This document shows, in pieces, positions 20,420 to 52,723 of a stretch of DNA of 64,000 nucleotides. Position numbers and translations under genes: made by a program. The first letter of the stretch is position 1; every line of letters starts with the position of its first letter. The stretch comes from Blastocladiella emersonii ATCC 22665 (lineage: Eukaryota > Fungi > Blastocladiomycota), in NCBI GenBank assembly GCA_025594325.1, contig JANHCV010000003.1, positions 1,240,001-1,304,000 of the forward strand. Reading direction: 5' to 3'. The notes under the pieces are model-generated. The model was given only the letters and a program-made list of their open reading frames with translations, made no database searches and had not been told where the DNA came from.

Positions 20420-20678
20420 GGTCTCAACCACTGCAAGCAGGCCATTGTAAGATCATAACTGTACTATATGTTGTTGCTCCTCAATCCGAACGTAGCGACA
20501 CGCGACGCGCACAGTGCTTGCGCACCGCAACGTTGCCGCGGTGCTCCGACGGAACTCCTGAACCACAGCCGCCGTACAAAGTTATGACGAGCACGTTTTT
20601 CATACTCGGTGAGACGCTAGGAGGCAACAGTCTTAATGCATCACACCCAAAATCAGTCATGCGAATCTCACGTGCAAG

Positions 20679-20709
20679 GTGCGAGACGCGTTGGTCTCGC
20701 GTCTCGCAC
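20679..20709. repeat. Perfect 12-bp stem / 7-nt loop hairpin
   Basis: GTGCGAGACGCG-TTGGTCT-CGCGTCTCGCAC. Confidence 0.75.
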
Positions 20710-21581
20710 ATCGCGACCGCTTTCCGACACCGCTCGCCGTGCAGGGCAACAAAACGCCGGCGTTCCCCCGCCCGCCCAGACTTGTTCCCAGATTCTTCTG
20801 TAAAACTACCATGGCGCTGATTGAAGAGTGTTTGCGACTCCCCCGGACGGCCGTCGGGGCGATGGCGCCTTCGCGGGCACCTCGTCTCGCCTGGCCGGGC
20901 GCGGGGGACAGGATCGTGCGTGGCGCTCCCAACCACCTTGTTTCTCGAGGTCCACGCTACCAAATCTCTGAGCCATCTTCTTACGTTGCTGCTTTACGTC
21001 CGTCTCCTCGCAGTTTTCGTTTTCGTGGTCGAGCTCAAGCCGATGTGCTCTGCTCGACCACTGCGTTGCTACTTTACGTCCTCCAATCGATCATCGCCGC
21101 TCGTGCTCTTCACACGCGCTTGAGCCGCCAAGAAAGCATCAATTATTAGCTTCTGATGCTCGCACGCAGGGGGTCGAGCGCGGCAGCCCGAGACAGCCGC
21201 GATGATGATCCTTCAACCCAGCGTAAGCTCACCCTCGGGTCGGGCTCTGTCGTGCGCACCATGGTGCGGAATCGAGAAAAAGTAACGCTGAGCGTGCGTG
21301 TCCGGGGACGGCAAGGTCAAAAGTAGTGCGGGAGCCGCCGTTCGACGCCAAGAGGATCAGGTTCTCAACAGAGTCTCGCGGCCTTCACACTTCAAGGCGC
21401 CCTTTCATGACGAATTCTCTTTCGAGGCACGATCTGCTTGCGAGGCGAAACTCGCGCTTCTCCTGGTTCAACGGCGGTAAGATAAGAGCAGCGGCAAGCG
21501 AGCGCAGCCTTCCATCGTCGTGTCGCAGCTCTGAGATCAACGCCGTGTCCATGTACGCGTCCGACAAGACAAAGCTGGCGC

Positions 21582-22158
21582 CGAGACACGCAAGACGTCA
21601 TCGAAGCAACACGGCGCGCATGTTCGCCCACGGGTCCAGCGAGTAACAGTCAGAGCAGGGTCACGGTGCACACGCGCTGACCGCCAGGACAAGCGGCGCA
21701 GGGAGCGGCGCGTACGACTCAAGAGCACATACGGCAACCCGACAGAACCGGCTCGCGTGCCGCGCAAGTACGATGTTGACGCCGTCGACGACGTGCGTGG
21801 GCCCACCGACCGTGACCACGGCGGCGATCACGCGCACTGCCACGATCGCTGGGTCCTTGTCCGCGCAATCGAGCCCGAGCAAGAGCATGGTGCCGCGGAA
21901 CTCGTGCATGGCGGGCTGGTGTCGCTCGTGATCGTCGTCGGTGCCTTGGCCAGAACGCGACGGCGCGCCGTATTTCGTGCTTTCAAAGCCGGCGACGAAG
22001 ACGCCCTGGTCGGCCTCGGCCGTCAGCATGCTCTCGTTGCGCACAACCCCGCATGCCGTGCAAACGACCTGCGGGTCGGCTTCCTCGAGGTCGGACGCCG
22101 GTGCGCGGCACGACGGACACCCTGGCGCTCGTGCTGATGCATGGTGTGACGAATTCAT
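21582..22158 (-). pseudogene. Decayed TFIIB-related factor (BRF1-like) relic, left-arm copy
   Basis: Zinc ribbon CPSCRAPASDLEEADPQVVCTACGVVRNESML. An out-of-frame downstream piece FDDVLRVS resembles the BRF1 FSDVLQVN segment. No intact cyclin folds. Confidence 0.5.
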
Positions 22159-22325
22159 GGGTTGGAAGTTGGTCAGCGAGCAGAGGAGGTGAGAAGGGCG
22201 GCGACGAGTCGAGGCCGTTCCGCGCGCTTCTGCGGCCTTCGCCGACCTTCACCGCCCCGTTCACTTCACATCCATGGCCATCCACGGCCACCGCGTCATC
22301 AGAAGCCGTCGCCATGGCCGAGATC

Positions 22326-22331
22326 TATAAA
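22326..22331 (+). promoter_or_regulatory. TATA box of the PB1 gene (mirror at 50932-50937)
   Basis: TATAAA about 100 bp upstream of ATG 22427. Confidence 0.5.
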
Positions 22332-22426
22332 GCGAGGCGGTCCCCCGACCTACCTCGACTGGATCAGAGCTCATCACAGCAACGCAGCGACTGACGACCA
22401 TCACACCGGCCAACAGTACCACCACC

Positions 22427-23581
22427 ATGGCCCCGACCATCCCCTACTCGCCGAGCACTTACGTCGTCAAGCTGCGCGCGCACGGCACCCTGCGCCGCGT
22501 CCGTGTGCCGCACACCGTCGACTGGCCCACGTTCCTCGCCACGGTCCACCGCTTGTTCCCGCACACGCGCGCCTCGACCAGCTCCCTCGAGATCACGTAC
22601 ACGGACGAGGACGGCGACGTCATCTCGCTGTCGACCACGGACGAGCTCCGCGAGGCCTTGCAAACGGCCGAGCAGCTGGGTCGCGCGCCGCTGGTCTTCA
22701 GCGTCGTGGGCGACGACATGAGCGACTCGGACGCGGCCTCGATTGCCAGCTGGCGCGCGCGCGTCGTCTCGGGCCCGTTGCTCGAGGAGGTCGAGGTGCC
22801 GCCGTCGCCCGTGTCCACGACCTCGTCCTCGTCTTCGTCAAGTTTGGAGCCGCGCTCGCCCGTCTCGGCCAACGCCACGGACTCGGACGTCGAGTCGGTC
22901 GCCATTGACGCCAACGCCTATGAGCAGATGAGCCTGCCCGGCAGTGAGGCCGACGACTACGACTCCGTCTCGGACTTGGACGCTTCGAGCAGCGACGACA
23001 ACGACGAATCTGCTGACGAGGACGCCTCGCCCAAGGAGAACCTCGCCGCGCGTCAAGCACCCGCTACCAAGACGCGCAAGTTCTCGTCGCAGCCCAACTC
23101 GCCGACCATGAACGCCTTCGGCATGCTCAGCGCCCTCTTCGGCAGCCCCGACTCGCCCCGCCCGTGCACCTCCCGTGCCGACCGCGATCGCCCTCATCAT
23201 CCCGCAACCACCGCTCAGCGTCAGCACGCTGCCGCCGTGACCGCCGCGCGCGAGCGGGAAGAGATGGAGCGCCGCCGCCGCTGTCGCCAGCGCGCCATGG
23301 AGCTCGCGGCCGCGCAAGAGCGCGAACGCCAGTACGCCGAGTACGTCCGCGAGCTCGAGCGCCAGCGCCGCCGCGAGTTGCAGATCGAGCGGGAGCGCGA
23401 GGAGCGCGAGTACCGCCGTGCCCTGACCGCCGAACGCCAACGTCGCCAGCAGCAGGAGGCCACCGCTATCGAGATGATGATGATGGACCCCTTCACGGCC
23501 ATGTGCCGCGGGAGCAGCCACCGCCGCCAGCGCGCATCGCCAGCTCAGTATATCTCGACGATCCCTGGATGGGCGTGGTAA
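22427..23581 (+). CDS. PB1-domain protein with acidic Ser-rich linker and charged coiled coil, left-arm copy
   Basis: YVVKL (basic Lys) and OPCA motif YTDEDGDVISLSTTDELREAL; E/R/Q-rich helical C-terminal region; strong codon bias; single exon. Confidence 0.88.
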   Translation: MAPTIPYSPSTYVVKLRAHGTLRRVRVPHTVDWPTFLATVHRLFPHTRASTSSLEITYTDEDGDVISLSTTDELREALQTAEQLGRAPLVFSVVGDDMSDSDAASIASWRARVVSGPLLEEVEVPPSPVSTTSSSSSSSLEPRSPVSANATDSDVESVAIDANAYEQMSLPGSEADDYDSVSDLDASSSDDNDESADEDASPKENLAARQAPATKTRKFSSQPNSPTMNAFGMLSALFGSPDSPRPCTSRADRDRPHHPATTAQRQHAAAVTAAREREEMERRRRCRQRAMELAAAQERERQYAEYVRELERQRRRELQIEREREEREYRRALTAERQRRQQQEATAIEMMMMDPFTAMCRGSSHRRQRASPAQYISTIPGWAW

Positions 23582-25969
23582 GCTGAGATGAATACAATTC
23601 CTCCCTTTGACTGAATTGAAGCTCGATCTCGAAAAAAGCCTGCTAGTCTCGATCGAACCAGTCTCCCTCGCCAACCAACTTTGCCGAGTCCCTTGCCCAC
23701 CAGGTTTCCGCTCACGCTCAAGTTCCGAGACTTGTTGCGCTCGCAGCGGTGCTGTCGCATGAGAGAGCAAGCACTGACTCGTCCGCCGACGCTTGGTGCC
23801 AGAGCGTACCCTGCGAAGCGAGGAGGTGCAACCGCGGGACGGACCCACCGCCGGGCCTTGGTCGCTCGTGGCGACGACGGCGTGCAAAGCAGCCGAAAGA
23901 CGAGATGCGGCAAGTGACGGTCGGTTTCCATGCGATTCGTGGGTGGCAGAGCAGCATAGAGGAGAGCAGCGACCGCCGGCTCGACGCGCCGCTCAAACAA
24001 GTCGGCTCGCCTCGAGGAGTCAGTTCACCGCGCATCTGAGCAGCGCTCAGGCATGGTTTGCGAGCAACTCGAGAAGGAGGTGCACGGCGATCGCGTGAGC
24101 CAACGCGCAGTCGGCGTTCGCACAGAGCGCGCGCGACAGAGGGGGCAACAGCGTGCGCGTTGCATCAGGACGCGTCCTCGGACGACATGGCGTTGCAGTT
24201 GAATCGCTCGCTGGGTCTCTCTTTGGCTCGGAATTCATGCAGCAACATGTAAGACGGGCCTCGTTTGAGCCCGCTGGCGACGCAGAGCGGTCGGGTCGCT
24301 GGGCAGGTCGCCCGCGGCGGGTCGAGGAGGACGGGATCTGTGAGATGATTGCCGTGCTCAGTCGGTCGGTCGTGACCAGCATGAAGGTGAATGGGATGAA
24401 GATGCTGGCGGTTCCGTGGAGGACAAGAAGCGGTGGCGAGCGCGCCCGTCGGAACTGCGATAGAGAAGGTTCGCGGCGCTCCCTCGGCGCTAGATCTCCT
24501 CGTTCGGCAGTGCCAGCGCACTCCAGAGCGCGTCGCACTAGGAGACGGCAGCCGATCGAGTGCGGCGCAGCGACTCGAACCGACACTCAGTGTCACGGGC
24601 ACTCCGAGGAGGCAGCAGACCGTCGGTGCCGCCGTGCAAGTGCCGTTGCGGGTAGTCGCGCAAGCTTATGCGGTACATGGTGCCCCTGGGACGCCTGTGA
24701 ACGCGCCGGCGAGACGAAGGCTCGGGGGAGAGGGGACCGCCGTCGCTCGAGGGGGTGGGAGTGCGGTCCGCCACGCTCAGCGCACAGTGATGCCATGTGG
24801 CGCAACGCGTCGGCAGCACGCGCCGAGGTCCAATCCCTCTTCTGCTTTGCACCACGGCGCGAGGGCGTGCGGTAACTCGGGGTTGCCGACCGAATGGAAC
24901 GCATTTGCACTCGCTGCTGGGGTGGCGCGAGGTGAAACTCGTCGCGTCGCGGAATCACGCCATGGTCACGTTTTGTCTCGCAGCCGCGGCCGCGGGAGAC
25001 GCGCGCACGCACACGTCGACCACACTTGCCTCCCGAAACGCGACGCGTCGATGCGTCGATACGTCGGCGCGTCGAACAGCTTGTTCTCTTGCCACATCAT
25101 GCTTTGACTCCTTTTGCGATGCCATCGACCGCCCCGCCTTCCGCCACGTGCTGATGCAATACCGCCCGTAACCGCTCGACGGGCTCGCGCCACGTACCCG
25201 GGTGCACTCGTGCCAACCTGCGCAGGCGGACCGCCGGTTCAGTTTAGCCGGGCTCCGACCCCGGGTCCCGTGTTAACACGGATCGTCTGTCGCGCGACGA
25301 GTGGCACAGGCAGCGCGACGCCGCCGTAACCTCGAGCACTCCAGTCTTGCACACTGCACCGGCTGCTGCGCAACGCCGGCATGCAGTCGTTCAAGGCTGC
25401 CGCTCGGACCTGAACCTGACCCGCGCGTCCGCACGTGTATGCCGACCGGCCGGCCGTCGCGACACACTCTTCAAGCGCCGTTGGGGTTTCAGCCGTGTCC
25501 GTCCAGTACGTCAAGCGCACGCGACGAGATGTCTGCTGACGCAGGGCGTGTCCGTCCAGATGGCGACGACGTCAAGGAGATCCTGGGCATGGCCAGCCGA
25601 GCCGATCCGAGCTGAGCCCACGACTACCTGCAACCGGACTCAGCACGCTTCGTGTCGTGTTCGGTCCCAACATCAGCCGCGCGCGACACGGATCAGCGCG
25701 GTACGTGTTCTCACTCTCGACGCCCTCGCCGCGTATGCGTCGTCGCGGGCGCGCACACGCCCTTGCCGAGTGATCTGTCCGCCAAGCGGCAGGTCAGGCT
25801 CGGCGTGGAGCGCGAAGTGATTGCGAGGAGTTGGGTGCGGGTACGCGGATGCTCGATGCACCTCGCACGAAACGGCCTGTACTGACATGAGCGCGTCGAA
25901 TCTCGTGTAGAAGCGACTCCAATTACCTCTCGGCCGTGCTAACTTTGGCGGTTCCGCATGCGCACGAGC

Positions 25970-26300
25970 TCAAGCTCGAGTCGCTCAACTGCGCTGCTAC
26001 GACGCGTCAAGGCGACCACGCTCACGATCAATCAGCGTACGGCATGTAGCTCGACCCTGACGCGCGAGTTCAAGTCGGCGGGCGGCGTACATTGCCTGAC
26101 ACGGGACGTGTCGTTTCGTCGGTCGCCACGGAACATCACACTGATGATCACTCACCTCTCGACGCTTCCATTCACCAGAACATCGTCGTGCCAGTCGATC
26201 CAACAGCTGGCGTTCGTTCGCGACAACGCACGACGACCGAGAACCTGCACGCACGCGCTCAAGGTCGGCATCGGCGTGGGCCAGATCGCGCTCAAGAAGT
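25970..26300 (+). repeat. Diverged direct repeat copy 1 (relic paralog); mirror about 46963-47293
   Basis: Collinear blocks shared with 27880-28265: CGACGCGTCAAG, CCACGCTCA, CGGCGGGCGGCGTACATTGCC, TCGTCGGTCGCCAC, CACGACGACC-GAGAACC, GTGGGCC...TCGCGCTCA. Confidence 0.75.
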
Positions 26301-27879
26301 AGGTCGGCACTCGTTCGAGAACTCGCTGATCGAGCTCCAGGGCGCGACCATGGCCATGGTCATGGCCATGAACCGGGTCGGTCGCTGGCCGCGGGCCGAT
26401 CGGCAAGCGCCAGTAGGCAGGCAGCTCAAGCTGGTCGCCGCCATCCCCGAGCTCGTGCTCGAGCTCGCGCGCCTGAGTGCAAGCCGAGCGCGAGTGGTGG
26501 CTGATGTACGGTACGCAAAAGGAGTCCATCGCCATCCGCAGACTCACATGACGCGTCACTCGAATCCAGGGCGAGGTTGACGCTACGACTACCGCCGCAA
26601 GACGCGCCTCGGGTCTCGGACCTCGCTCAGTCAACGACCGCCAGCGATTAGCAACAGTGGGCCAGCCTGCAGGACTCGTACCGGAGACACTCGCGCGCAG
26701 TGGCCCTAGCTGCCGTCGAGCATGTCGGACCGGGTCGCGACGCAATCCAGTTCGAGTCGGCGGCGGGCGGCAGTGGCGGGGATGCAGCAGGTCATCGTCA
26801 ACCTGGGACGTGTCGTCGCTCTGGGTCCCTCATCCGCGCGGACACGGATGTTCGCTCACGCTACTTGCTCGCTCGCTCGCCGCGCTACTCTAGAAACCTA
26901 CCGCGTGTCGTGACCGAGCGCTCTCAACAGTCCGGCCATTCTCGACGTTTGGACGGCCATCGCGGCCATGATGACCATCGCGTCTATCCGAGTCGTGCTC
27001 CCGCCTCGCCAGCGCTCCAAATCGATGCACCTCGAAAACTACTCTCTGTCGCAGGAGCAAGCAGCACGGCCCATTACGGTTTTTCGGGTGCCACAACGAA
27101 GGTATGCTACGGATCGGCTACCGCATCACAGGAAATGACGCGTCGCTCGGCTCTAGGAGACAGCCAGCCCGCCATGTATACGGCCTCCCGTGGACATGTT
27201 CGGCGGCGTCTTTGCTACTTCCGGTACGCCAAAGGCACGCTTCCCGACGTCTGCTGACGCGACGCGCATCGTTCCAGACCACCTACAACGACGTCAAGAA
27301 GACTTTTGGCGGCTCCACCTCCTCCTCGAGTCAGAACGGTACGCGTCCCTTCCCTTACTCGCTGCGCTCTCATCGAAAACGCGTCGCTTTGCGCTCGTCA
27401 TCCAGTTGTCCAGTTTATTTCGCGTCACGGCCTCGATTTCTTGACGGACTGTTCGCTCGCCCGGCTCCCAGTCCAGCCGGTCCGCCATGTTGCTCGATGG
27501 CAACGAAAACGCGAACACGCGCTCGCCGAGGCGATCCGGGTGCCGCGATGCAGGTCAAGCTCGACGCGGATCGCGTAGATCCCGGTACGGCAGCAGCAGT
27601 TTGGTGGCGGTAAGCGCGTGTTTGCAAAGGATCCGTCACTCGGCTCAACACTGACCTGGGTCGGCGGCTTCCGCGTAGCAGCAATGACATCAAGCTCGCG
27701 CTCGGGCGTGCTGGCCGCGGCGTCGGCCGGCTGTTCCGCGACCATCAACTGCTCCTCGTGTCTCTTGCCCAGTTCTCGCAGCAAGGTCGCTTCCTCTCAA
27801 CGGTTTGCCTCAAGCAGAGCGACGGTACGAGTTTTCATGGTCTCGTAGTGGTGGTCATGCACTCATTGCTCACGCGCGC

Positions 27880-28265
27880 TCGAGTACTACTGCAGCACGC
27901 TACGCCGACGCGTCAAGTCGGCCACGCTCAAGTTCAACACTCAGCGCTCACGCTCAACGTACGGCACGACGCTCGACTGACCGCGCAGCGCGGCGCGAGT
28001 CCTGGACGGCGGGCGGCGTACATTGCCCTGCATGGATGGTACGTGATATGTGTCGTCGCTTCGTCGTCGGTCGCCACAAAAAGTATCACCAATGACCGAC
28101 CACTCACATCTTGCTGTTGCTGAATTTCTCCAGATCCTCGCCATGACTCTCGATTCCGGCGAGTCGTGCTCCTTGGCAACACACGACGACCCGAGAACCA
28201 GCACGCGCGCATTCAAGGCCAGCGGCAGCATTGAACGTGGGCCGGCTCGCGCTCACCGAGAAGCT
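27880..28265 (+). repeat. Diverged direct repeat copy 2 (relic paralog); mirror about 44998-45383
   Basis: Same blocks as copy 1. Peptide pairs RRVKSATLKFN/RRVKATTLTIN, AGGVHC/AGGVHC, RTSTRAFKA/RTCTHALKV, VGRLALTEK/VGQIALKK. Confidence 0.75.
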
Positions 28266-28968
28266 CAACACGCACACACGCGCGCCCGTACTCGCCTCCA
28301 ACTTCGACGCTGCCGCCGCGACCAGCGGTGCTTCACGACGACAACGACTCGTTTCCGTGATGGTACGCTTTATGTCTTCTGCGCTTAGTGGTTGCGAATA
28401 CGGCGGACTGACGCGCGCGCGAACCATGAACGTTCCTCCAAGTAGGCGCTGCACGCTCAACAAGGGTTGTTGATCGATCGTATCGCCACCGTCGCTCTTC
28501 CTCTTCCTCAAGCGTGTCCGGATCATCTTCCTCGTCGTCGCCCATCTGTTTCGGCAACCTCGCCGCCTCGCCACGCTTCGCTCTCGCGCCATCGCCCAAC
28601 CCATCAGCACGTGTTCGTGGCCTCGCGCTGTGGCCATGGCCGCGGATGGCATCAACTATGGCTCATCACCCGCGACATGATCGAGCTCGGAGCGCGCGAC
28701 ACGAACCGACGACTCACATCCCCAAGCTACCCGCGCGCGCACGTTCGAGTCCAAGCCGTCGTCGTGGTCGTGGTCGTGGTCATGTCGGCGGCGGTGGCGC
28801 AGGTCGTCGTCCAGCATGGGACGTATTTTCCTGGTTGGCCGCGTCAACCCCACCCATTCATCAGCTGATGATCACTCACGCATCGCTTGCTCGCTGCGCT
28901 GCTCTCGTAGAGCTGATGCCCGGTTCATCGTGCTTCGAGTCGAAAGGGTCACAGTGAAAAAGCACCCC

Positions 28969-29331
28969 GGTTAGGAAATCGCCCTAACCCGCTCCTAACC
29001 CATGGTTAGGGTAGGTTAGCACCGCTTAGGTTTTTCGGAACGGTTAAGAAGGGTTAGGAGACCGGTTAGCGCGATCGAATCTCTAACCAGTCATGGTCAG
29101 GTTAGGATCGTGGGTTAGCGACGCAAGGTTAGGTCGTGGGTTAGCAACGACTAGTAGTCGAGCTAGCGTCGCGGTTAGCAGGCGGCTAACAAGTAATGAG
29201 TTTGAAGGCGCTTAGGCGTAGTTTGACGCGCGACGAGGTTAGAGAAGCGCGACTAATCGCGAGACGGATTAGTGCGAAGTTACGTAGATTAGTATCGGAA
29301 GCGATTAGGAGCTGGTTAGCAGCTAATTAGG
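28969..29331. repeat. Left subterminal array of GGTTAG/CTAACC motifs (mirror 43932-44294)
   Basis: 12 GGTTAG and 3 CTAACC exact hexamers plus GATTAG/CTTAGG variants in about 360 bp; includes a near-tandem GGTTAGG(A)TCGTGGGTTAGC duplicate. Confidence 0.85.
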
Positions 29332-32240
29332 CTCGATACAGCTGAATATCATTTACTGACTCATCATGACACGTTTTCGGCAAATCACGTATATTGAGGT
29401 GATTAAAACAGCGGCCACGCCGCTTGCGCTCGCGCACGCGTCCCACGCGTTGCGCCACACTCGCCGCCCGAAATCACGCCGCCCCCGATCGGCCGGTCCC
29501 AGGACACCGCACAGCCCGCGACCGCCACCCGTCACACGCCGCCGCTCCCCCGAGCAGCGACGGCGAACACAACGGCGAATACCGCCGTACTCGTCGGCCG
29601 CGACTCGCGACCGCCGCGTCGAGCCGAAACCAACCGCCTTCGCGATGATGGCCAGGTACAGCTCGAGCAGCAGCGGCAAGCCGCGGCCGCGGACGTGGCG
29701 GCGGTCGCGTCCGCCCAGCACCACCGCCGAGTCGTGATGAGGAGAACACGTACATCGATATGCTTGAGCGATACCGGCTACGATTCACGGCACGCAGGAC
29801 TTCAGTGAACGGTCCGAGGAGCACGAGCGAGGCGCCTTGCGACGGCGGCCCGCAAACGAGGCCCGTGAGGACGGGCTCCGCTCGCCAGCACACTCGTCGA
29901 GATACCACGAGAGGCATTGGTGGAGGCGAAGAGGAGGAGAAACAGCAGCTCACGTACGGATCAGCGACGAGACGAGAACAGGCCGACCATGGCCATCGAC
30001 CTTCACGCTGACCTGGGCCGATTCCGTTAGCCTAGACAATGACGAGCGGACACAGTACAGGTTAGCTATGAGTTAGGTCGGCCGATGAGACACACACGAC
30101 CGTCACGGTCAAACTGGGAGGAGGCGTACCCGTCGCCGTCACGTCGGCCGTGGCGCGCATGCTATACGAGGCGAATATCTTGACGAGGGGCGGCCGCGGG
30201 GGAGAAGAGTGCCTTGCTGAGCAGAGTGCGGGCGCGCGAAGCTTAAATACCGCCGCGGCGGAAGGACCCTCCCGGTCTCAGCAAGAACGCGAGCGAAGGG
30301 GTTCGAAACCTTGTTCGGTCCCCACGACGCGTCACGTGCAGATGACCGCCGCGTCCACAACTGCACGGCTGGCTCGCACGCCGTTGCACGAGTCATGCTA
30401 CCCGTGTCGCAAAATCCTCAAAGGTTTTTTCAACACGACACAGAACTGAATAAGGCACTGCTTGCAACGTATTTAACGGAAGAAATACAATCAAATGCGT
30501 CCAACTGGTGCCCTGGCGCTGTGTCGCGCAACGGCGACGCGGTCGCCCTGTTCACGCACCATCAGAGGGCGGGTAGAACAGCTTGTGCGACGGGTCATCG
30601 GGATGCTCTGCGAGCACCTCGGCCTCGCGAATCCGGTCCTGGCGGTTAGTCTCGATGGTCGAGTCCGCGTGCCGCGCGGCCATGTCGAAGCCGAGGGTCG
30701 CCTGCTCGCTCGCGCGCACGTCAAAAGGGACGAGCATTCCCGCCATAGGCATCTCGGGCGAGGCCGCGAAATGGTCGACTGCGACGACGGCCAGGCGCCG
30801 GTTCCCGCGCGCGTGATGCTGAGGTGAGGGCGTGGATGCGTCATCCTCGCCAATCTCGGCGGGATGGTAGAGCGCAATCGGGCGCACCCGATCGATAAGG
30901 CGCACAATCTACACTCGTCCCTCGCGTGTCAGTCAACCGCGACAAAAAGACGCCCATCACGCGTCCACATACCTTGGCGCTGCGCCACGAGGGGCGACGC
31001 CGCTTGACCTTGGTGACACAGTCGCCGACGACGAGCCTGAACTCAAACTGCAGCAGGTCATGCACCGACTTCTCGCGGTTGGCGGGGACGAGGCTCCCAC
31101 ACTGGCCGAGCTGCGCGACAAACTGATGCACCGGGTGAAACCTGCCCCGCCCTTGGCGCCGACGACGGATGCGTTGAAGTCCACTGTGCGTGGCGCGAGG
31201 CGCGCAGCTGTGCGTAGTAGGGCGCCATCGAGTCGGTATCGCGCGGTGGTCCCTCTAGATGCAGAACCGGTACATGACGCTCCCGACGACTTTGCGTGGG
31301 CGATCTTCGGTCGCCGCCATGGTCGCTCAAGGGTACAGCATGGTAAGGACGTGCGCATGCGCGAGCCCCGCGGCGAGCAGGCACGCGGCGGCGTACAGAC
31401 CCGCGGTGAGCGGCGGGGCGCGAGTATCGGCGCCCGTGGCCAGCTGGGCGTGCAGGACGGCAGCGACGGCGAGGAGCCTTTGGAGTACGTCGCGCAAGAA
31501 CGAGGTGACGCGCAGGGCGGCTCAGCACATAGCGCGGTTGGCGGTGGCCAGGTCCGCCGCGACAAACAGCGCCTGGAGCCAGCACAGGGACGGCGACACG
31601 AGCGGGTACCTGGTGAACGGCGGAACGGGGATATCAAGGACAATCACAACGAAGTGCGGGAGGACCTGATGCAGGTCGCGGTCTCCCGCCGCGCTTTCCG
31701 TGTTGGCGTCCATTCACCTGGCACGCATCGTGATACCGCGCCTGTTACGGGAAACGCTCAGCAACAAGCAAGCGCTCACCGTCTTCTCGCGGCGCTGGAG
31801 CGCGGCCGCGCCAGCAACTCATGGCCTCGAGCTTGTGTCGGCGCTCGCGCGGTGCACGGGTTTCTTCGAGTACGTCGGCCAGGTCTTTGCGCAGGTGACG
31901 CTCGTCAACGAGGTCGACTACTTGCATGACGACCTCGCCGACAACTTCCCCAAGCGGATCGAGATCGCGGGCGTGCGACGGATCGAGGAGCCGTTTGGAC
32001 GCTGGCGACGGCGCTCACCTCGTCCTTCCAGTGCAGGCCATCACGGCGCGCGTGTGCAGCGACCGGCGCTTGACGCGGTCGGAGCGGCGGAGGACGGTCG
32101 AGGCGCCGATCACCACGGTGGACGCCATGACGACGCGGGCAAGCTGGATCGTGTGCGAGATCCCTGTCCCGACGTGGACGAGCACATAGAAGGCGTTGCA
32201 ACTAGTATACATGGTGTATTCATTGAGTAACGGTGGGAGT

Positions 32241-32418
32241 GCTTAGGCCGAGGTTAAGGGAAGGGTTAGCGTGATGGAGTTGCAAACCGGGCCAAACTCT
32301 ATCCTAAGCCGCACGCCGAGCTAAGCTTTCCTAACCGAGGTGCTAGCTCAGGGACTTTGCCGCGTGGCGCCGATCGCGATCGCACCGCAGCTAAGCCCGC
32401 CTAACCGCAGCCCTAGCC
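32241..32418. repeat. Right subterminal array of GGTTAG/CTAACC/CTAAGC motifs (mirror 40845-41022)
   Basis: GCTTAGG, GGTTAAG, GGGTTAGC, 3x CTAAGC, 2x CCTAACC and CCCTAGCC in about 180 bp, mostly opposite in orientation to the left array. Confidence 0.75.
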
Positions 32419-33768
32419 TGGGCGCTTTTTCACTGTGGTGGTCAGCAGTCCGACGATGATCATCCGTTTCTCGAGCATTGTATTGACGCCGTGATCAACA
32501 AGAATGGCGACGCGCGCGTCAAGCTCTTCACCCTCCACGTCGATCTGGTTCCACTTCACTTCTCGCCAGCAAGCTAGCTTGCCGCGCAGCACGGCGACCA
32601 AGATCCGGGTGACGGGCGATACATTGGTGGGTGGGTACGCGACAAGCCGTTCACTCGCTCGATTACTTGCCACGGATACTGACGGTTCGCCCGGGTCTAG
32701 TGAGATTCGACGACACGAGGGCGCGACACGCGACGATCGGCCGGCGCGCTTTTTTCTGCTGCCGCGAGCAAGGCGAGCTGCTTTGACTGCAAATCACTCC
32801 ACTCCAAGATGGGCTCAGCGGCGCGTCGCGTCGCGGCTCGGCGAGGCAAGATCAAGGCTCTCGCTCTGGCGTGGGCCAGCTCTCGCACATTACGGAGCTC
32901 GACACTCGCGCAGGGACTCGCTCCCTGATCGGGACCCAGCGCGCGGCCACGGCCATGGCCATGGTGACTCGGGCCGCGGGTCGTCCAGCAAGGAGCAGCA
33001 GCAGCAGTCCAAGCTGACCATCGTCGTCCATCGCCGAGACCACTCCACGCTTCCGATTTGGCCCTTGACTATGGATTGCCGCGACTCGGCACACCACCGA
33101 TTTCACCTGCTACTTTCTATGGCTTCCGAAGCGCTCGCTCAACGATCAAATCGAGTCCGCTTTCGCTAGTTTTATTGCTTCCTCTCGTATTTTTGCCCGG
33201 TAGTACTTGCAAGCTTGGTCGCCGAGTCCTTGCTTTTCCCGCTCAGTCGGAGTTGGAACGTTGCGCTGCTCATGTTCATGCTCTACGCGGCAACCCGCGC
33301 ATCCCCAAGTTTTTCTCATCAGTGGTAGGCTCTGAGCCAAGGCCCAACAACAAGCTTCCATATTGATTATTCGGCATCACTTGTCATAAACTCAGCAGGC
33401 ACAGGTGCTATGCCCGCGCTCTTCGTCAGCGGTTGAACAAGCTGACGCCGCGAGTAAAGCAAAATGATAGGTAACCCGTCGTAAGACGCAAAATATCATT
33501 GATTTTTTTCATTGATTTTTTTTTCTTCAACCATATTGTGTTCTTCGCTGAATTTAACACTTGTGATGCACGGAGCGCGCAACGCGTGACGCGCTGCGCC
33601 ACAGCTGCGCCACAGCGTGACCACGGCGAGCTCTGAGTGGTCGTGGTCCGCACTGCTCATCTTCGCGTCTCGCATGTCTCGCACTGCGCCTACGGCTCCG
33701 TCAGTCGGTCATGTGCCCCTTCGTTTGCACTCGCGGAGTCCTCGCCGCATGCGTGTCACCTCCGATCG

Positions 33769-33774
33769 TATAAA
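33769..33774 (+). promoter_or_regulatory. TATA box of the Gln/Ala-rich gene (mirror 39489-39494)
   Basis: TATAAA about 85 bp upstream of ATG 33859; AATAAA at 35164-35169 downstream of the stop. Confidence 0.5.
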
Positions 33775-33858
33775 TCCGGGCCGTTCCCCGCTCTCCCCGC
33801 CGCTTCACAACACGCTTGCATACTTTGCTCACGTATCCGACAAACCTACTATCAAAGA

Positions 33859-43800: not shown

Positions 43801-44313
43801 GAGTGTGGCGCAACGCGTGGGACGCGTGCGCGAGCGCAAGCGGCGTGGCCGCTGTTTTAATCACCTCAATATACGTGATTTGCCGAAAACGTGTCATGAT
43901 GAGTCAGTAAATGATATTCAGCTGTATCGAGCCTAATTAGCTGCTAACCAGCTCCTAATCGCTTCCGATACTAATCTACGTAACTTCGCACTAATCCGTC
44001 TCGCGATTAGTCGCGCTTCTCTAACCTCGTCGCGCGTCAAACTACGCCTAAGCGCCTTCAAACTCATTACTTGTTAGCCGCCTGCTAACCGCGACGCTAG
44101 CTCGACTACTAGTCGTTGCTAACCCACGACCTAACCTTGCGTCGCTAACCCACGATCCTAACCTGACCATGACTGGTTAGAGATTCGATCGCGCTAACCG
44201 GTCTCCTAACCCTTCTTAACCGTTCCGAAAAACCTAAGCGGTGCTAACCTACCCTAACCATGGGTTAGGAGCGGGTTAGGGCGATTTCCTAACCGGGGTG
44301 CTTTTTCACTGTG
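40826..44313. mobile_element. CMC/EnSpm-like TIR element, right-arm copy
   Basis: CACAGTGAAAAAGCG at 40826 and GCTTTTTCACTGTG ending at 44313, flanked by AC on both sides (mirror of GT). Confidence 0.8.
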
Positions 44314-47300
44314 ACCCTTTCGACTCGAAGCACGATGAACCGGGCATCAGCTCTACGAGAGCAGCGCAGCGAGCAAGCGATGCGTGAGTGATCATCAGCT
44401 GATGAATGGGTGGGGTTGACGCGGCCAACCAGGAAAATACGTCCCATGCTGGACGACGACCTGCGCCACCGCCGCCGACATGACCACGACCACGACCACG
44501 ACGACGGCTTGGACTCGAACGTGCGCGCGCGGGTAGCTTGGGGATGTGAGTCGTCGGTTCGTGTCGCGCGCTCCGAGCTCGATCATGTCGCGGGTGATGA
44601 GCCATAGTTGATGCCATCCGCGGCCATGGCCACAGCGCGAGGCCACGAACACGTGCTGATGGGTTGGGCGATGGCGCGAGAGCGAAGCGTGGCGAGGCGG
44701 CGAGGTTGCCGAAACAGATGGGCGACGACGAGGAAGATGATCCGGACACGCTTGAGGAAGAGGAAGAGCGACGGTGGCGATACGATCGATCAACAACCCT
44801 TGTTGAGCGTGCAGCGCCTACTTGGAGGAACGTTCATGGTTCGCGCGCGCGTCAGTCCGCCGTATTCGCAACCACTAAGCGCAGAAGACATAAAGCGTAC
44901 CATCACGGAAACGAGTCGTTGTCGTCGTGAAGCACCGCTGGTCGCGGCGGCAGCGTCGAAGTTGGAGGCGAGTACGGGCGCGCGTGTGTGCGTGTTGAGC
45001 TTCTCGGTGAGCGCGAGCCGGCCCACGTTCAATGCTGCCGCTGGCCTTGAATGCGCGCGTGCTGGTTCTCGGGTCGTCGTGTGTTGCCAAGGAGCACGAC
45101 TCGCCGGAATCGAGAGTCATGGCGAGGATCTGGAGAAATTCAGCAACAGCAAGATGTGAGTGGTCGGTCATTGGTGATACTTTTTGTGGCGACCGACGAC
45201 GAAGCGACGACACATATCACGTACCATCCATGCAGGGCAATGTACGCCGCCCGCCGTCCAGGACTCGCGCCGCGCTGCGCGGTCAGTCGAGCGTCGTGCC
45301 GTACGTTGAGCGTGAGCGCTGAGTGTTGAACTTGAGCGTGGCCGACTTGACGCGTCGGCGTAGCGTGCTGCAGTAGTACTCGAGCGCGCGTGAGCAATGA
45401 GTGCATGACCACCACTACGAGACCATGAAAACTCGTACCGTCGCTCTGCTTGAGGCAAACCGTTGAGAGGAAGCGACCTTGCTGCGAGAACTGGGCAAGA
45501 GACACGAGGAGCAGTTGATGGTCGCGGAACAGCCGGCCGACGCCGCGGCCAGCACGCCCGAGCGCGAGCTTGATGTCATTGCTGCTACGCGGAAGCCGCC
45601 GACCCAGGTCAGTGTTGAGCCGAGTGACGGATCCTTTGCAAACACGCGCTTACCGCCACCAAACTGCTGCTGCCGTACCGGGATCTACGCGATCCGCGTC
45701 GAGCTTGACCTGCATCGCGGCACCCGGATCGCCTCGGCGAGCGCGTGTTCGCGTTTTCGTTGCCATCGAGCAACATGGCGGACCGGCTGGACTGGGAGCC
45801 GGGCGAGCGAACAGTCCGTCAAGAAATCGAGGCCGTGACGCGAAATAAACTGGACAACTGGATGACGAGCGCAAAGCGACGCGTTTTCGATGAGAGCGCA
45901 GCGAGTAAGGGAAGGGACGCGTACCGTTCTGACTCGAGGAGGAGGTGGAGCCGCCAAAAGTCTTCTTGACGTCGTTGTAGGTGGTCTGGAACGATGCGCG
46001 TCGCGTCAGCAGACGTCGGGAAGCGTGCCTTTGGCGTACCGGAAGTAGCAAAGACGCCGCCGAACATGTCCACGGGAGGCCGTATACATGGCGGGCTGGC
46101 TGTCTCCTAGAGCCGAGCGACGCGTCATTTCCTGTGATGCGGTAGCCGATCCGTAGCATACCTTCGTTGTGGCACCCGAAAAACCGTAATGGGCCGTGCT
46201 GCTTGCTCCTGCGACAGAGAGTAGTTTTCGAGGTGCATCGATTTGGAGCGCTGGCGAGGCGGGAGCACGACTCGGATAGACGCGATGGTCATCATGGCCG
46301 CGATGGCCGTCCAAACGTCGAGAATGGCCGGACTGTTGAGAGCGCTCGGTCACGACACGCGGTAGGTTTCTAGAGTAGCGCGGCGAGCGAGCGAGCAAGT
46401 AGCGTGAGCGAACATCCGTGTCCGCGCGGATGAGGGACCCAGAGCGACGACACGTCCCAGGTTGACGATGACCTGCTGCATCCCCGCCACTGCCGCCCGC
46501 CGCCGACTCGAACTGGATTGCGTCGCGACCCGGTCCGACATGCTCGACGGCAGCTAGGGCCACTGCGCGCGAGTGTCTCCGGTACGAGTCCTGCAGGCTG
46601 GCCCACTGTTGCTAATCGCTGGCGGTCGTTGACTGAGCGAGGTCCGAGACCCGAGGCGCGTCTTGCGGCGGTAGTCGTAGCGTCAACCTCGCCCTGGATT
46701 CGAGTGACGCGTCATGTGAGTCTGCGGATGGCGATGGACTCCTTTTGCGTACCGTACATCAGCCACCACTCGCGCTCGGCTTGCACTCAGGCGCGCGAGC
46801 TCGAGCACGAGCTCGGGGATGGCGGCGACCAGCTTGAGCTGCCTGCCTACTGGCGCTTGCCGATCGGCCCGCGGCCAGCGACCGACCCGGTTCATGGCCA
46901 TGACCATGGCCATGGTCGCGCCCTGGAGCTCGATCAGCGAGTTCTCGAACGAGTGCCGACCTACTTCTTGAGCGCGATCTGGCCCACGCCGATGCCGACC
47001 TTGAGCGCGTGCGTGCAGGTTCTCGGTCGTCGTGCGTTGTCGCGAACGAACGCCAGCTGTTGGATCGACTGGCACGACGATGTTCTGGTGAATGGAAGCG
47101 TCGAGAGGTGAGTGATCATCAGTGTGATGTTCCGTGGCGACCGACGAAACGACACGTCCCGTGTCAGGCAATGTACGCCGCCCGCCGACTTGAACTCGCG
47201 CGTCAGGGTCGAGCTACATGCCGTACGCTGATTGATCGTGAGCGTGGTCGCCTTGACGCGTCGTAGCAGCGCAGTTGAGCGACTCGAGCTTGAGCTCGTG

Positions 47301-49681
47301 CGCATGCGGAACCGCCAAAGTTAGCACGGCCGAGAGGTAATTGGAGTCGCTTCTACACGAGATTCGACGCGCTCATGTCAGTACAGGCCGTTTCGTGCGA
47401 GGTGCATCGAGCATCCGCGTACCCGCACCCAACTCCTCGCAATCACTTCGCGCTCCACGCCGAGCCTGACCTGCCGCTTGGCGGACAGATCACTCGGCAA
47501 GGGCGTGTGCGCGCCCGCGACGACGCATACGCGGCGAGGGCGTCGAGAGTGAGAACACGTACCGCGCTGATCCGTGTCGCGCGCGGCTGATGTTGGGACC
47601 GAACACGACACGAAGCGTGCTGAGTCCGGTTGCAGGTAGTCGTGGGCTCAGCTCGGATCGGCTCGGCTGGCCATGCCCAGGATCTCCTTGACGTCGTCGC
47701 CATCTGGACGGACACGCCCTGCGTCAGCAGACATCTCGTCGCGTGCGCTTGACGTACTGGACGGACACGGCTGAAACCCCAACGGCGCTTGAAGAGTGTG
47801 TCGCGACGGCCGGCCGGTCGGCATACACGTGCGGACGCGCGGGTCAGGTTCAGGTCCGAGCGGCAGCCTTGAACGACTGCATGCCGGCGTTGCGCAGCAG
47901 CCGGTGCAGTGTGCAAGACTGGAGTGCTCGAGGTTACGGCGGCGTCGCGCTGCCTGTGCCACTCGTCGCGCGACAGACGATCCGTGTTAACACGGGACCC
48001 GGGGTCGGAGCCCGGCTAAACTGAACCGGCGGTCCGCCTGCGCAGGTTGGCACGAGTGCACCCGGGTACGTGGCGCGAGCCCGTCGAGCGGTTACGGGCG
48101 GTATTGCATCAGCACGTGGCGGAAGGCGGGGCGGTCGATGGCATCGCAAAAGGAGTCAAAGCATGATGTGGCAAGAGAACAAGCTGTTCGACGCGCCGAC
48201 GTATCGACGCATCGACGCGTCGCGTTTCGGGAGGCAAGTGTGGTCGACGTGTGCGTGCGCGCGTCTCCCGCGGCCGCGGCTGCGAGACAAAACGTGACCA
48301 TGGCGTGATTCCGCGACGCGACGAGTTTCACCTCGCGCCACCCCAGCAGCGAGTGCAAATGCGTTCCATTCGGTCGGCAACCCCGAGTTACCGCACGCCC
48401 TCGCGCCGTGGTGCAAAGCAGAAGAGGGATTGGACCTCGGCGCGTGCTGCCGACGCGTTGCGCCACATGGCATCACTGTGCGCTGAGCGTGGCGGACCGC
48501 ACTCCCACCCCCTCGAGCGACGGCGGTCCCCTCTCCCCCGAGCCTTCGTCTCGCCGGCGCGTTCACAGGCGTCCCAGGGGCACCATGTACCGCATAAGCT
48601 TGCGCGACTACCCGCAACGGCACTTGCACGGCGGCACCGACGGTCTGCTGCCTCCTCGGAGTGCCCGTGACACTGAGTGTCGGTTCGAGTCGCTGCGCCG
48701 CACTCGATCGGCTGCCGTCTCCTAGTGCGACGCGCTCTGGAGTGCGCTGGCACTGCCGAACGAGGAGATCTAGCGCCGAGGGAGCGCCGCGAACCTTCTC
48801 TATCGCAGTTCCGACGGGCGCGCTCGCCACCGCTTCTTGTCCTCCACGGAACCGCCAGCATCTTCATCCCATTCACCTTCATGCTGGTCACGACCGACCG
48901 ACTGAGCACGGCAATCATCTCACAGATCCCGTCCTCCTCGACCCGCCGCGGGCGACCTGCCCAGCGACCCGACCGCTCTGCGTCGCCAGCGGGCTCAAAC
49001 GAGGCCCGTCTTACATGTTGCTGCATGAATTCCGAGCCAAAGAGAGACCCAGCGAGCGATTCAACTGCAACGCCATGTCGTCCGAGGACGCGTCCTGATG
49101 CAACGCGCACGCTGTTGCCCCCTCTGTCGCGCGCGCTCTGTGCGAACGCCGACTGCGCGTTGGCTCACGCGATCGCCGTGCACCTCCTTCTCGAGTTGCT
49201 CGCAAACCATGCCTGAGCGCTGCTCAGATGCGCGGTGAACTGACTCCTCGAGGCGAGCCGACTTGTTTGAGCGGCGCGTCGAGCCGGCGGTCGCTGCTCT
49301 CCTCTATGCTGCTCTGCCACCCACGAATCGCATGGAAACCGACCGTCACTTGCCGCATCTCGTCTTTCGGCTGCTTTGCACGCCGTCGTCGCCACGAGCG
49401 ACCAAGGCCCGGCGGTGGGTCCGTCCCGCGGTTGCACCTCCTCGCTTCGCAGGGTACGCTCTGGCACCAAGCGTCGGCGGACGAGTCAGTGCTTGCTCTC
49501 TCATGCGACAGCACCGCTGCGAGCGCAACAAGTCTCGGAACTTGAGCGTGAGCGGAAACCTGGTGGGCAAGGGACTCGGCAAAGTTGGTTGGCGAGGGAG
49601 ACTGGTTCGATCGAGACTAGCAGGCTTTTTTCGAGATCGAGCTTCAATTCAGTCAAAGGGAGGAATTGTATTCATCTCAGC

Positions 49682-50836
49682 TTACCACGCCCATCCAGGG
49701 ATCGTCGAGATATACTGAGCTGGCGATGCGCGCTGGCGGCGGTGGCTGCTCCCGCGGCACATGGCCGTGAAGGGGTCCATCATCATCATCTCGATAGCGG
49801 TGGCCTCCTGCTGCTGGCGACGTTGGCGTTCGGCGGTCAGGGCACGGCGGTACTCGCGCTCCTCGCGCTCCCGCTCGATCTGCAACTCGCGGCGGCGCTG
49901 GCGCTCGAGCTCGCGGACGTACTCGGCGTACTGGCGTTCGCGCTCTTGCGCGGCCGCGAGCTCCATGGCGCGCTGGCGACAGCGGCGGCGGCGCTCCATC
50001 TCTTCCCGCTCGCGCGCGGCGGTCACGGCGGCAGCGTGCTGACGCTGAGCGGTGGTTGCGGGATGATGAGGGCGATCGCGGTCGGCACGGGAGGTGCACG
50101 GGCGGGGCGAGTCGGGGCTGCCGAAGAGGGCGCTGAGCATGCCGAAGGCGTTCATGGTCGGCGAGTTGGGCTGCGACGAGAACTTGCGCGTCTTGGTAGC
50201 GGGTGCTTGACGCGCGGCGAGGTTCTCCTTGGGCGAGGCGTCCTCGTCAGCAGATTCGTCGTTGTCGTCGCTGCTCGAAGCGTCCAAGTCCGAGACGGAG
50301 TCGTAGTCGTCGGCCTCACTGCCGGGCAGGCTCATCTGCTCATAGGCGTTGGCGTCAATGGCGACCGACTCGACGTCCGAGTCCGTGGCGTTGGCCGAGA
50401 CGGGCGAGCGCGGCTCCAAACTTGACGAAGACGAGGACGAGGTCGTGGACACGGGCGACGGCGGCACCTCGACCTCCTCGAGCAACGGGCCCGAGACGAC
50501 GCGCGCGCGCCAGCTGGCAATCGAGGCCGCGTCCGAGTCGCTCATGTCGTCGCCCACGACGCTGAAGACCAGCGGCGCGCGACCCAGCTGCTCGGCCGTT
50601 TGCAAGGCCTCGCGGAGCTCGTCCGTGGTCGACAGCGAGATGACGTCGCCGTCCTCGTCCGTGTACGTGATCTCGAGGGAGCTGGTCGAGGCGCGCGTGT
50701 GCGGGAACAAGCGGTGGACCGTGGCGAGGAACGTGGGCCAGTCGACGGTGTGCGGCACACGGACGCGGCGCAGGGTGCCGTGCGCGCGCAGCTTGACGAC
50801 GTAAGTGCTCGGCGAGTAGGGGATGGTCGGGGCCAT
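49682..50836 (-). CDS. PB1-domain protein, right-arm copy
   Basis: Translation identical to 22427-23581. Confidence 0.88.
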   Translation of the reverse strand: MAPTIPYSPSTYVVKLRAHGTLRRVRVPHTVDWPTFLATVHRLFPHTRASTSSLEITYTDEDGDVISLSTTDELREALQTAEQLGRAPLVFSVVGDDMSDSDAASIASWRARVVSGPLLEEVEVPPSPVSTTSSSSSSSLEPRSPVSANATDSDVESVAIDANAYEQMSLPGSEADDYDSVSDLDASSSDDNDESADEDASPKENLAARQAPATKTRKFSSQPNSPTMNAFGMLSALFGSPDSPRPCTSRADRDRPHHPATTAQRQHAAAVTAAREREEMERRRRCRQRAMELAAAQERERQYAEYVRELERQRRRELQIEREREEREYRRALTAERQRRQQQEATAIEMMMMDPFTAMCRGSSHRRQRASPAQYISTIPGWAW

Positions 50837-51104
50837 GGTGGTGGTACTGTTGGCCGGTGTGATGGTCGTCAGTCGCTGCGTTGCTGTGATGAGCTCTGAT
50901 CCAGTCGAGGTAGGTCGGGGGACCGCCTCGCTTTATAGATCTCGGCCATGGCGACGGCTTCTGATGACGCGGTGGCCGTGGATGGCCATGGATGTGAAGT
51001 GAACGGGGCGGTGAAGGTCGGCGAAGGCCGCAGAAGCGCGCGGAACGGCCTCGACTCGTCGCCGCCCTTCTCACCTCCTCTGCTCGCTGACCAACTTCCA
51101 ACCC

Positions 51105-51681
51105 ATGAATTCGTCACACCATGCATCAGCACGAGCGCCAGGGTGTCCGTCGTGCCGCGCACCGGCGTCCGACCTCGAGGAAGCCGACCCGCAGGTCGTT
51201 TGCACGGCATGCGGGGTTGTGCGCAACGAGAGCATGCTGACGGCCGAGGCCGACCAGGGCGTCTTCGTCGCCGGCTTTGAAAGCACGAAATACGGCGCGC
51301 CGTCGCGTTCTGGCCAAGGCACCGACGACGATCACGAGCGACACCAGCCCGCCATGCACGAGTTCCGCGGCACCATGCTCTTGCTCGGGCTCGATTGCGC
51401 GGACAAGGACCCAGCGATCGTGGCAGTGCGCGTGATCGCCGCCGTGGTCACGGTCGGTGGGCCCACGCACGTCGTCGACGGCGTCAACATCGTACTTGCG
51501 CGGCACGCGAGCCGGTTCTGTCGGGTTGCCGTATGTGCTCTTGAGTCGTACGCGCCGCTCCCTGCGCCGCTTGTCCTGGCGGTCAGCGCGTGTGCACCGT
51601 GACCCTGCTCTGACTGTTACTCGCTGGACCCGTGGGCGAACATGCGCGCCGTGTTGCTTCGATGACGTCTTGCGTGTCTCG
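51105..51681 (+). pseudogene. BRF1/TFIIB-like relic, right-arm copy
   Basis: Mirror of 21582-22158. Confidence 0.5.
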
Positions 51682-52723
51682 GCGCCAGCTTTGTCTTGTC
51701 GGACGCGTACATGGACACGGCGTTGATCTCAGAGCTGCGACACGACGATGGAAGGCTGCGCTCGCTTGCCGCTGCTCTTATCTTACCGCCGTTGAACCAG
51801 GAGAAGCGCGAGTTTCGCCTCGCAAGCAGATCGTGCCTCGAAAGAGAATTCGTCATGAAAGGGCGCCTTGAAGTGTGAAGGCCGCGAGACTCTGTTGAGA
51901 ACCTGATCCTCTTGGCGTCGAACGGCGGCTCCCGCACTACTTTTGACCTTGCCGTCCCCGGACACGCACGCTCAGCGTTACTTTTTCTCGATTCCGCACC
52001 ATGGTGCGCACGACAGAGCCCGACCCGAGGGTGAGCTTACGCTGGGTTGAAGGATCATCATCGCGGCTGTCTCGGGCTGCCGCGCTCGACCCCCTGCGTG
52101 CGAGCATCAGAAGCTAATAATTGATGCTTTCTTGGCGGCTCAAGCGCGTGTGAAGAGCACGAGCGGCGATGATCGATTGGAGGACGTAAAGTAGCAACGC
52201 AGTGGTCGAGCAGAGCACATCGGCTTGAGCTCGACCACGAAAACGAAAACTGCGAGGAGACGGACGTAAAGCAGCAACGTAAGAAGATGGCTCAGAGATT
52301 TGGTAGCGTGGACCTCGAGAAACAAGGTGGTTGGGAGCGCCACGCACGATCCTGTCCCCCGCGCCCGGCCAGGCGAGACGAGGTGCCCGCGAAGGCGCCA
52401 TCGCCCCGACGGCCGTCCGGGGGAGTCGCAAACACTCTTCAATCAGCGCCATGGTAGTTTTACAGAAGAATCTGGGAACAAGTCTGGGCGGGCGGGGGAA
52501 CGCCGGCGTTTTGTTGCCCTGCACGGTGGGCAGGAAGTGGCGCGTGTTGACTCAGTCATCCGGTATCACGCCCACCGCTGCCACGGCGCCGTGGGACTCA
52601 CCGCCTGCTTCACGTCGCGGCCCGCGTGCCCGATGCTCCTCGACCCGCGAGACATCCTATGCATCGCTGAATGAAACCGTCACCAACTTCTTGCATTCTG
52701 TAAACCTCTCAGCGTCTCCAACC

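Follow-up and report, generated by a model that had tools for sequence, protein, structure and literature searches.

A 31.8-kb palindrome with identical 14.8-kb arms on a chromosomal contig of the early-diverging fungus Blastocladiella emersonii

The chromosomal DNA of the early-diverging fungus Blastocladiella emersonii ATCC 22665 contains a 31.8-kb palindrome whose two 14.8-kb, gene-bearing arms are identical in the assembly. It lies in a stretch of 64,000 bp (assembly GCA_025594325.1, contig JANHCV010000003.1, positions 1,240,001-1,304,000), called the window here and numbered from its first base, at 48% of the 2.64-Mb contig. Exact self-comparison revealed that 20737-35574 (left arm, B) is the reverse complement of 37689-52526 (right arm, B') over 14,838 bp per arm, with 0 mismatches, 0 indels and a constant coordinate sum of 73263, just as an initial annotation made from the sequence alone had proposed; a repeat search of the window returned the same arm pair. 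Together with a spacer (S) of 2,114 bp (35575-37688), the whole palindrome measures 31,790 bp. With arms well beyond the ~8 kb and 99% identity that mark the type, it belongs among the large near-identical palindromes, and chance is excluded as the source of so exact a mirror. A diverged third copy of most of the arm sequence, locus T, resides on the same contig and serves below as the outgroup to both arms.

The palindrome has sharp limits. The mirror match stops without fading at each arm end: over the following 60 positions, whether outward or inward, agreement is no better than chance. Searches with blastn (word size 7) and tblastx found no homology shared by the left flank (A) and the right flank (C), and no inverted homology inside the spacer, returning compositional noise only; as no faded homology continues beyond the arm ends, there is no sign of older, longer arms. 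The window is GC-rich (63-70% guanine plus cytosine), and the palindrome is barely lower in GC than its surroundings.

The best-known large perfect palindromes are those of mammalian sex chromosomes and tumour amplicons; such structures resist assembly and are often dismissed as artefacts. PacBio HiFi reads with a mean length of 10.5 kb were assembled by the La Jolla Assembler; duplicates were then removed with purge_dups and by hand, and the result was polished by Pilon using 65-bp Illumina reads (PMC9730499). Four public runs (X1-X4), which come from one sample, the same as the assembly, contain the palindrome sequence and were compared as k=31 contigs. HiFi and GAIIx libraries are named in the genome paper (PMC9730499), and from year, depth and contig sizes X2 appears to be the HiFi run and X1 the GAIIx run. 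The loose ends of X4 contigs are loxP linker sequences, which identifies X4 as a Cre-lox mate-pair library; its insert sizes could inform on the long-range linkage of the palindrome.

Quantification of contig depth over 17800-23700 revealed that the arm is present in two copies. A contig from flank A reaches 20766 at a depth of 145 in X2, 28.6 in X1 and ~4.8 in X3, while the arm contig begins exactly at 20737, the predicted arm end, at depths of 283, 72.4 and 11.5, respectively (flank:arm ratios of 1:1.95, 1:2.5 and 1:2.4). Unrelated long contigs have depths of 126-145 in X2 and 20-28 in X1, similar to the flank, so the flank is single copy and the arm two-copy. The doubling that the initial annotation had expected of a real palindrome is thus present in the arm, with single-copy depth in the flanks and in the Ty3 part of the spacer. 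At the level of reads, arm identity covers 20737-23700 (~3 kb); the remainder of the arm identity rests on the HiFi assembly.

The junctions were also recovered from the reads, three of them firmly. A second single-copy contig shares only 20737-20766 with the arm, and its loose end agrees at every base with the reverse complement of 52527-52556, so that both outer junctions are present. The left inner junction (35574/35575) is crossed by a 517-bp contig of about single-copy depth (35547-36063) in X1 and X2, and by one of 413 bp (35547-35959) in X3; in the region 33700-39560, overlapping contigs of similar depth in the three runs form a chain through the spacer to 37243. At the right inner junction (37688/37689), two of the three sampled spanning 31-mers occur in X1, X2 and X3, and since about a quarter of the words there could equally derive from locus T, this junction is less firmly supported. 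The spacer is at about single-copy depth over 35547-37243 and shares its last 505 bp with locus T only, between flanks that are single copy and unrelated to each other; the layout A-B-S-B'-C described in the initial annotation is borne out.

These data bear directly on whether the palindrome was made by the assembly, through a chimeric fold-back HiFi read, a head-to-head join of haplotigs, or dispersed copies joined via a repeat in the spacer. The mean HiFi read is shorter than the arm, the assembly was purged of duplicates and polished, a single sample lies behind all runs, and the right inner junction is backed by two of three sampled words, some of which locus T could supply. Against this, the arm is at 2x and the flanks are at 1x in both Illumina-like and HiFi-like runs, reads contain three of the four junctions (the two outer ones and the left inner one), and the Ty3 part of the spacer is unique, of about single-copy depth, and connects two arm ends. 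A haplotig join would predict arms at 1x, and a chimeric read cannot yield 2x in a different library; because the separate short-read library also has doubled arms, neither explains the depth. An assembly artefact is therefore very unlikely, and collapse of the consensus, which the initial annotation had also considered, is rejected as far as these data go. These results confirm that the palindrome is real, with two copies of the arm in the DNA.

Locus T was found by a look-up of the PB1-domain protein encoded in the arms. It lies within contig positions 1,453,241-1,493,340 (covered by the pieces L001, L002 and L004), ~200 kb downstream, in direct orientation relative to the left arm, and matches the arm at 21654-28949 and 32437-35574. 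Locus T lacks the 3.5-kb transposon of the arms (termini CACAGTGAAAAAGC / GCTTTTTCACTGTG), having instead an empty site at L001:18425-18470 with an apparent 2-bp duplication (GT). It carries a 7.3-kb element of its own, inserted at the position equivalent to 35270-35278 of the arm (L002:11376-18714; contig ~1,474,366-1,481,704), which ends in perfect inverted repeats of 17 bp (TAGTCTCGGTGCCAGAC), has a target-site duplication of 9 bp (GAAGCGACC) and contains one 605-amino-acid open reading frame (ORF) with a helicase C-terminal domain, where no gene is annotated; this insertion is likely a DNA transposon. A read joint from 35396 to 37184 was considered as a deletion variant of the spacer and rejected, being the arrangement of locus T, and the seemingly multi-copy depth at the inner ends of the arms is explained by locus T together with summed double placement.

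Comparison of the arms with locus T revealed a number of clues to their history: firstly, locus T holds an intact 624-amino-acid TFIIB-like gene of which the arms keep the start only, making it the parent locus and the arm sequence a copy that begins inside that gene (no significant match to a continuation of the decayed gene was found in flank A or C); secondly, past the arm end at 35574, locus T runs directly into the reverse complement of 37688-37184, the right end of the spacer (segment Z), and this collinearity across 37688/37689 makes the right inner junction ancestral; thirdly, the arms reach ~0.9 kb past the homology with locus T, and hence the inverted copy was made at the palindrome site after the older duplication. 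Locus T is collinear across 37688/37689 and not across 35574/35575, and the centre thus combines an ancestral side with a novel breakpoint, as in a fold-back. That breakpoint of the rearrangement is 35574/35575, where the arm abuts a truncated Ty3 pol.

The divergence between the arms and locus T is patchy, at 2-16% outside one near-identical tract, while the arms differ from each other at 0 of 14,838 positions. The tract spans 3.6 kb and has sharp edges (Table 1), and its pattern is the hallmark of ectopic gene conversion with locus T. The reads independently agree: a contig break at 22135-22164 coincides with the last difference between arm and locus T, at 22134, and depth steps up in X2 within the tract, from 283 to 423/412 (flank:arm:tract of 145:283:423/412, or 1:1.95:2.9; 28.6:72.4:76-88 in X1). 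Sites that differ between the arms and locus T show no GC bias (83 vs 106, p=0.11).

Together, these observations lead us to favour, at somewhat better than even confidence, an interstitial inverted segmental duplication in which the right arm was the template, a young copy with gene conversion as a helper. An older segmental duplication of at least 13.9 kb would first have carried sequence from locus T, the parent, to the palindrome site, taking along the Ty3/gypsy remnant and probably also a short inverted fragment beside it. The two loci would then have diverged, each gaining its own transposon, and exchanged patches through ectopic gene conversion. Finally, repair by replication, through fold-back or break-induced synthesis that the short inverted fragment may have primed, would have copied the right arm in inverted orientation over 14.8 kb, and the new arm would have been rejoined to flank A without homology, creating the junctions 35574/35575 and 20736/20737 and the layout A-B-S-B'-C. 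The structure, its copy number, the junctions, the ancestral state of the right inner junction and the conversion tract with locus T come directly from the data, whereas the sequence of events, the mode of repair and the reason why the arms are identical are inferred.

The recency of the last step is suggested by the absence of any difference between the arms as against 2-16% to locus T, by the sharp arm ends, by a transposon present in both arms and absent from locus T, and by the lack of GC bias at sites that differ from locus T. Measured against locus T, the parent duplication would be at least about 100 times older than the arms, or the arms correspondingly more homogenised. The arms would be identical because the inverted copy is recent on the scale of divergence from locus T, because they are homogenised, or both, youth and homogenisation being inseparable here; conversion between the arms probably helps to keep them identical. 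Of the explanations that the initial annotation offered, a very recent inverted duplication and conversion between the arms both keep appreciable probability, and the tract of 3.6 kb with one difference to locus T shows directly that ectopic conversion acts on this sequence.

Several observations weigh against this account. Locus T has an extra inverted 163-bp copy of 35236-35398 abutting Z, which suggests that a short inverted repeat may have sat at the centre before the two loci separated; locus T would then have lost 35399-37183 by one deletion. At the 10 sites that separate the two small repeat copies of locus T, the arms of the window match them 5:5, too small a sample to favour either. 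The same 163-bp piece, as seen in locus T, is a candidate for the inverted repeat that primed the copying. The novel junctions A/B and B/S share 0 bases with their alternative neighbours, that is, they have no microhomology, and with no target-site duplication either, end joining is likelier than microhomology-mediated switching or transposition. The physical linkage A-B-S and the orientation of the spacer are deduced from graph logic and so are provisional. At 35365 (mirror 37898), contigs of three runs read thymine where the assembly has guanine in both arms; thymine is the base of the small inverted piece in locus T, yet past the limits of that piece the X3 contig resembles the arm. The discrepancy may reflect one difference between the arms, a base error in the assembly or a simplification in the contigs. 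Finally, the tract shared with locus T shows that gene conversion is active on this sequence, although it falls short of proving conversion between the arms.

An old palindrome, held identical by frequent conversion between its arms like the sex-chromosome palindromes of primates and mice, would account for some of these points: its inverted repeat would predate the split from locus T, and each later change, the 3.5-kb transposon insertion among them, would have spread to both arms. We regard this as a genuine possibility, if one with less than even prospects. Ectopic conversion has acted on the arm sequence, leaving 1 difference in 3,589 bp amid 6-16% divergence and a mosaic pattern between the arms and locus T, and the inverted copy of the arm's inner end abutting Z in locus T looks as if the centre had already been an inverted repeat before the duplication. 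That inverted piece is just 163 bp, however, and may have another origin. The arms show no excess of GC at the sites where they differ from locus T, their ends are sharp and without faded homology beyond them, and a young duplication likewise gives 0 differences in 14.8 kb. Transfer of a 3.5-kb insertion by conversion is possible, yet it is an extra step.

The long terminal inverted arms and the transposon remains inside the palindrome also recall a giant foldback-type transposon, or the insertion of the whole B-S-B' unit by a transposon. According to the initial annotation, the outer junctions coincide with neither a target-site duplication nor the end of an element, and inspection of the junction sequence agrees: no such duplication and no recognisable end is found at 20737 or 52526. 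Further genome copies of the kind a transposon would leave are likewise lacking, as the sequence occurs exactly twice apart from a single old, diverged paralog with different ends, and the content of the arms is that of ordinary host genes derived from locus T. We consider an origin of this kind the least probable of those discussed.

A functional inverted-repeat unit is a further alternative: a centromere of the fission-yeast or Candida tropicalis type, a flip-flop segment, or a hairpin-RNA locus that silences a Ty3 family. Centromeres of Schizosaccharomyces pombe (imr/cnt), Candida tropicalis and Komagataella phaffii have identical inverted arms around a unique core with retroelement remains. 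The palindrome, too, has a retroelement-derived core between identical inverted arms, it lies near the middle of its contig, and convergent gene copies point into the spacer. Its arms, however, contain annotated genes, three in each, and its GC content is barely below that of its surroundings. It does not look like an inverted-repeat centromere, and we hold a functional unit of any of these kinds to be very unlikely.

The coordinates of these features are collected in Table 1. The three annotated genes of each arm encode the PB1-domain protein, a 177-amino-acid protein within the transposon and a Gln/Ala-rich protein, the two copies of which are convergent toward the spacer. The outermost ~0.9 kb of the arm has no recognisable content, and the ~5 kb between the PB1 gene and the transposon contain no annotated genes. 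The initial annotation had described the mirrored sequence as identical down to pseudogene debris; the identity stands, and the debris consists in part of plain exons and transposon remains of a eukaryotic genome. The Ty3/gypsy relic of the spacer keeps an RNase H and the integrase zinc domain and is without reverse transcriptase and integrase core, and no direct repeats resembling long terminal repeats (LTRs) were found around it inside the window. The unit 37184-38027 was considered as an LTR itself, given its TG start, an upstream purine-rich run and the inverted piece of locus T that ends at 38027; we leave it as LTR-like and unproven, since the arms and locus T fully explain its copy number. 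In the window, Pfam searches also matched a protein kinase; with the PB1 and Ty3/gypsy domains, this marks the sequence as that of a GC-rich eukaryote and not of a bacterium with pseudogenes. A GST gene anchors the window on the contig in plus orientation, and a look-up with an ORF of flank C returned no record. No Pfam match was obtained for small ORFs of the spacer, the junctions or the arm transposon.

Table 1. Coordinates in the window of the palindrome, its contents and its divergence from locus T (mirror coordinates and strands refer to the right arm).
Feature	Coordinates	Mirror	Strand (mirror)	Remarks
Left outer junction A/B	20736-20737			No microhomology, no target-site duplication, no annotated gene across
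Left arm B	20737-35574			Exact reverse complement of right arm; ~2x depth from 20737; probably the derived copy
Decayed 5' fragment, TFIIB-zinc-ribbon gene	21654-22158	51105-51609	- (+)	Residues 1-102 at 72%, 171-240 at 46%; intact in locus T only
PB1-domain protein gene, 384 amino acids, intact	22427-23581	49682-50836	+ (-)	Pfam PB1 2.5e-13; annotated; identical to NCBI H9P43_003347
DNA transposon, 3.5 kb, 14-bp terminal inverted repeats	28950-32437	40826-44313		Absent from locus T, which has an empty site; one annotated 177-amino-acid gene inside
Gln/Ala-rich repeat protein gene, 409 amino acids	33859-35088	38175-39404	+ (-)	Annotated gene pair
Inner 339 bp of left arm	35236-35574	37689-38027		Z plus 37689-38027 form one 844-bp unit
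Spacer S	35575-37688		+	2,114 bp; no annotated gene; ~1x unitig chain 35547-37243 in three runs
Ty3/gypsy pol relic	35605-37020		+	Pfam RT_RNaseH_2 9e-15, Integrase_H2C2 2.5e-14; 5' side cut by left inner junction
Segment Z, right 505 bp of spacer	37184-37688			97% to locus T, where contiguous with the inner end of the arm
Right arm B'	37689-52526			Probably the template copy; collinear with right end of spacer as in locus T
Right outer junction B'/C	52526-52527			Loose end of an X1 1x contig is the exact reverse complement of 52527-52556
Ectopic gene-conversion tract	22135-25723	47540-51128		1 difference to locus T in 3,589 bp; flanked by 15.6% and 6.2%
Arm-T divergence	21869-22150			15.6%
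Arm-T divergence	22151-25620			0.03% (1 difference)
Arm-T divergence	25621-27187			6.2%
Arm-T divergence	27192-28279			2.8%
Arm-T divergence	28281-28949			6.7%
Arm-T divergence	further inward			1.4-3.2%

A few further observations concern these loci. The Gln/Ala-rich protein has 409 amino acids in the arms and 394 in locus T (L004:215-1399), the two differing in repeat number. An older partial paralog of the 3' half of the PB1 gene (85% identity; L004:10033-10567), annotated as a 187-amino-acid gene, adjoins locus T, and so the PB1 segment has undergone more than one duplication. Where the Ty3 relic ends (37125-37149), X2 and X3 show an extra C and two substitutions relative to the assembly, with which X1 agrees; this discrepancy may be a mis-polish by Pilon. 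Outside the palindrome, at 55373-61933 (70% GC), two opposite-strand ORFs, each longer than 2,150 codons, overlap; at most one of them is likely a real gene.

In form, the palindrome groups with the large, nearly identical palindromes of mammalian sex chromosomes, where arm identity is maintained by arm-to-arm gene conversion (PMC8600007, PMC8327919, bioRxiv 10.1101/800185). P1-P8 of the human Y and the palindromes of the human and mouse X share with it gene-bearing arms of more than 10 kb that are more than 99.9% identical and a unique spacer of a few kilobases. The palindrome of B. emersonii, by contrast, belongs to an early-diverging fungus and sits on an ordinary chromosome; no germline role is known for its genes, arm-to-arm conversion is a candidate process, and no GC-biased signature was seen.

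In origin, it resembles inverted duplications seeded by DNA breaks. Yeast and mammalian palindromes can arise from short inverted repeats near breaks through fold-back priming, single-strand annealing or hairpin-capped breaks (PMC6103520, PMC10164571, PMC7999016). Here as there, an ancestral inner junction stands opposite a breakpoint, the neighbouring sequence has been copied in reverse to give the new arm, and a transposon-derived short inverted repeat may sit at the centre. Break-seeded events usually yield terminal duplications, dicentrics or amplification, whereas here the copy ends at 14.8 kb and is rejoined without microhomology. Origin-dependent inverted-repeat amplification (ODIRA) shares with the account proposed here an interstitial position, a basis in replication and inverted junctions where short inverted repeats lie (PMC4689423, PMC10766183). 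It yields inverted triplications; the depth outside the tract shared with locus T, however, is 2x and not 3x, and as ODIRA gives triplications it is an unlikely origin.

What is new in this case is the diverged third copy, locus T, an internal outgroup ~200 kb away that polarises the junctions and shows a conversion tract. The word 'inverted' is absent from the genome paper (PMC9730499), and a literature search for Blastocladiella and palindromes returned nothing that links the genus to chromosomal palindromes in the titles and abstracts retrieved. Read depth in separate libraries establishes a real large palindrome in an early-diverging fungus. As a consequence, each of three annotated genes is present twice, one of them as a convergent pair that faces a retroelement relic. 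Anyone using the assembly can treat the PB1 and Gln/Ala-rich genes as true duplicates and should take the assembled orientation of the spacer as provisional. The palindrome is a convenient microbial model for the origin of such structures and for the persistence of their identity. More speculatively, and on balance doubtfully, the genome as a whole may be under a regime in which short inverted repeats born of transposons are extended time and again into large gene-bearing palindromes, which very frequent intrachromosomal conversion then keeps letter-identical. Such a regime would be an autosomal fungal counterpart of the ampliconic palindromes of sex chromosomes, perhaps serving copy-correction in a clonal lineage, and this locus, with its diverged third copy, would be a natural place for measuring conversion.

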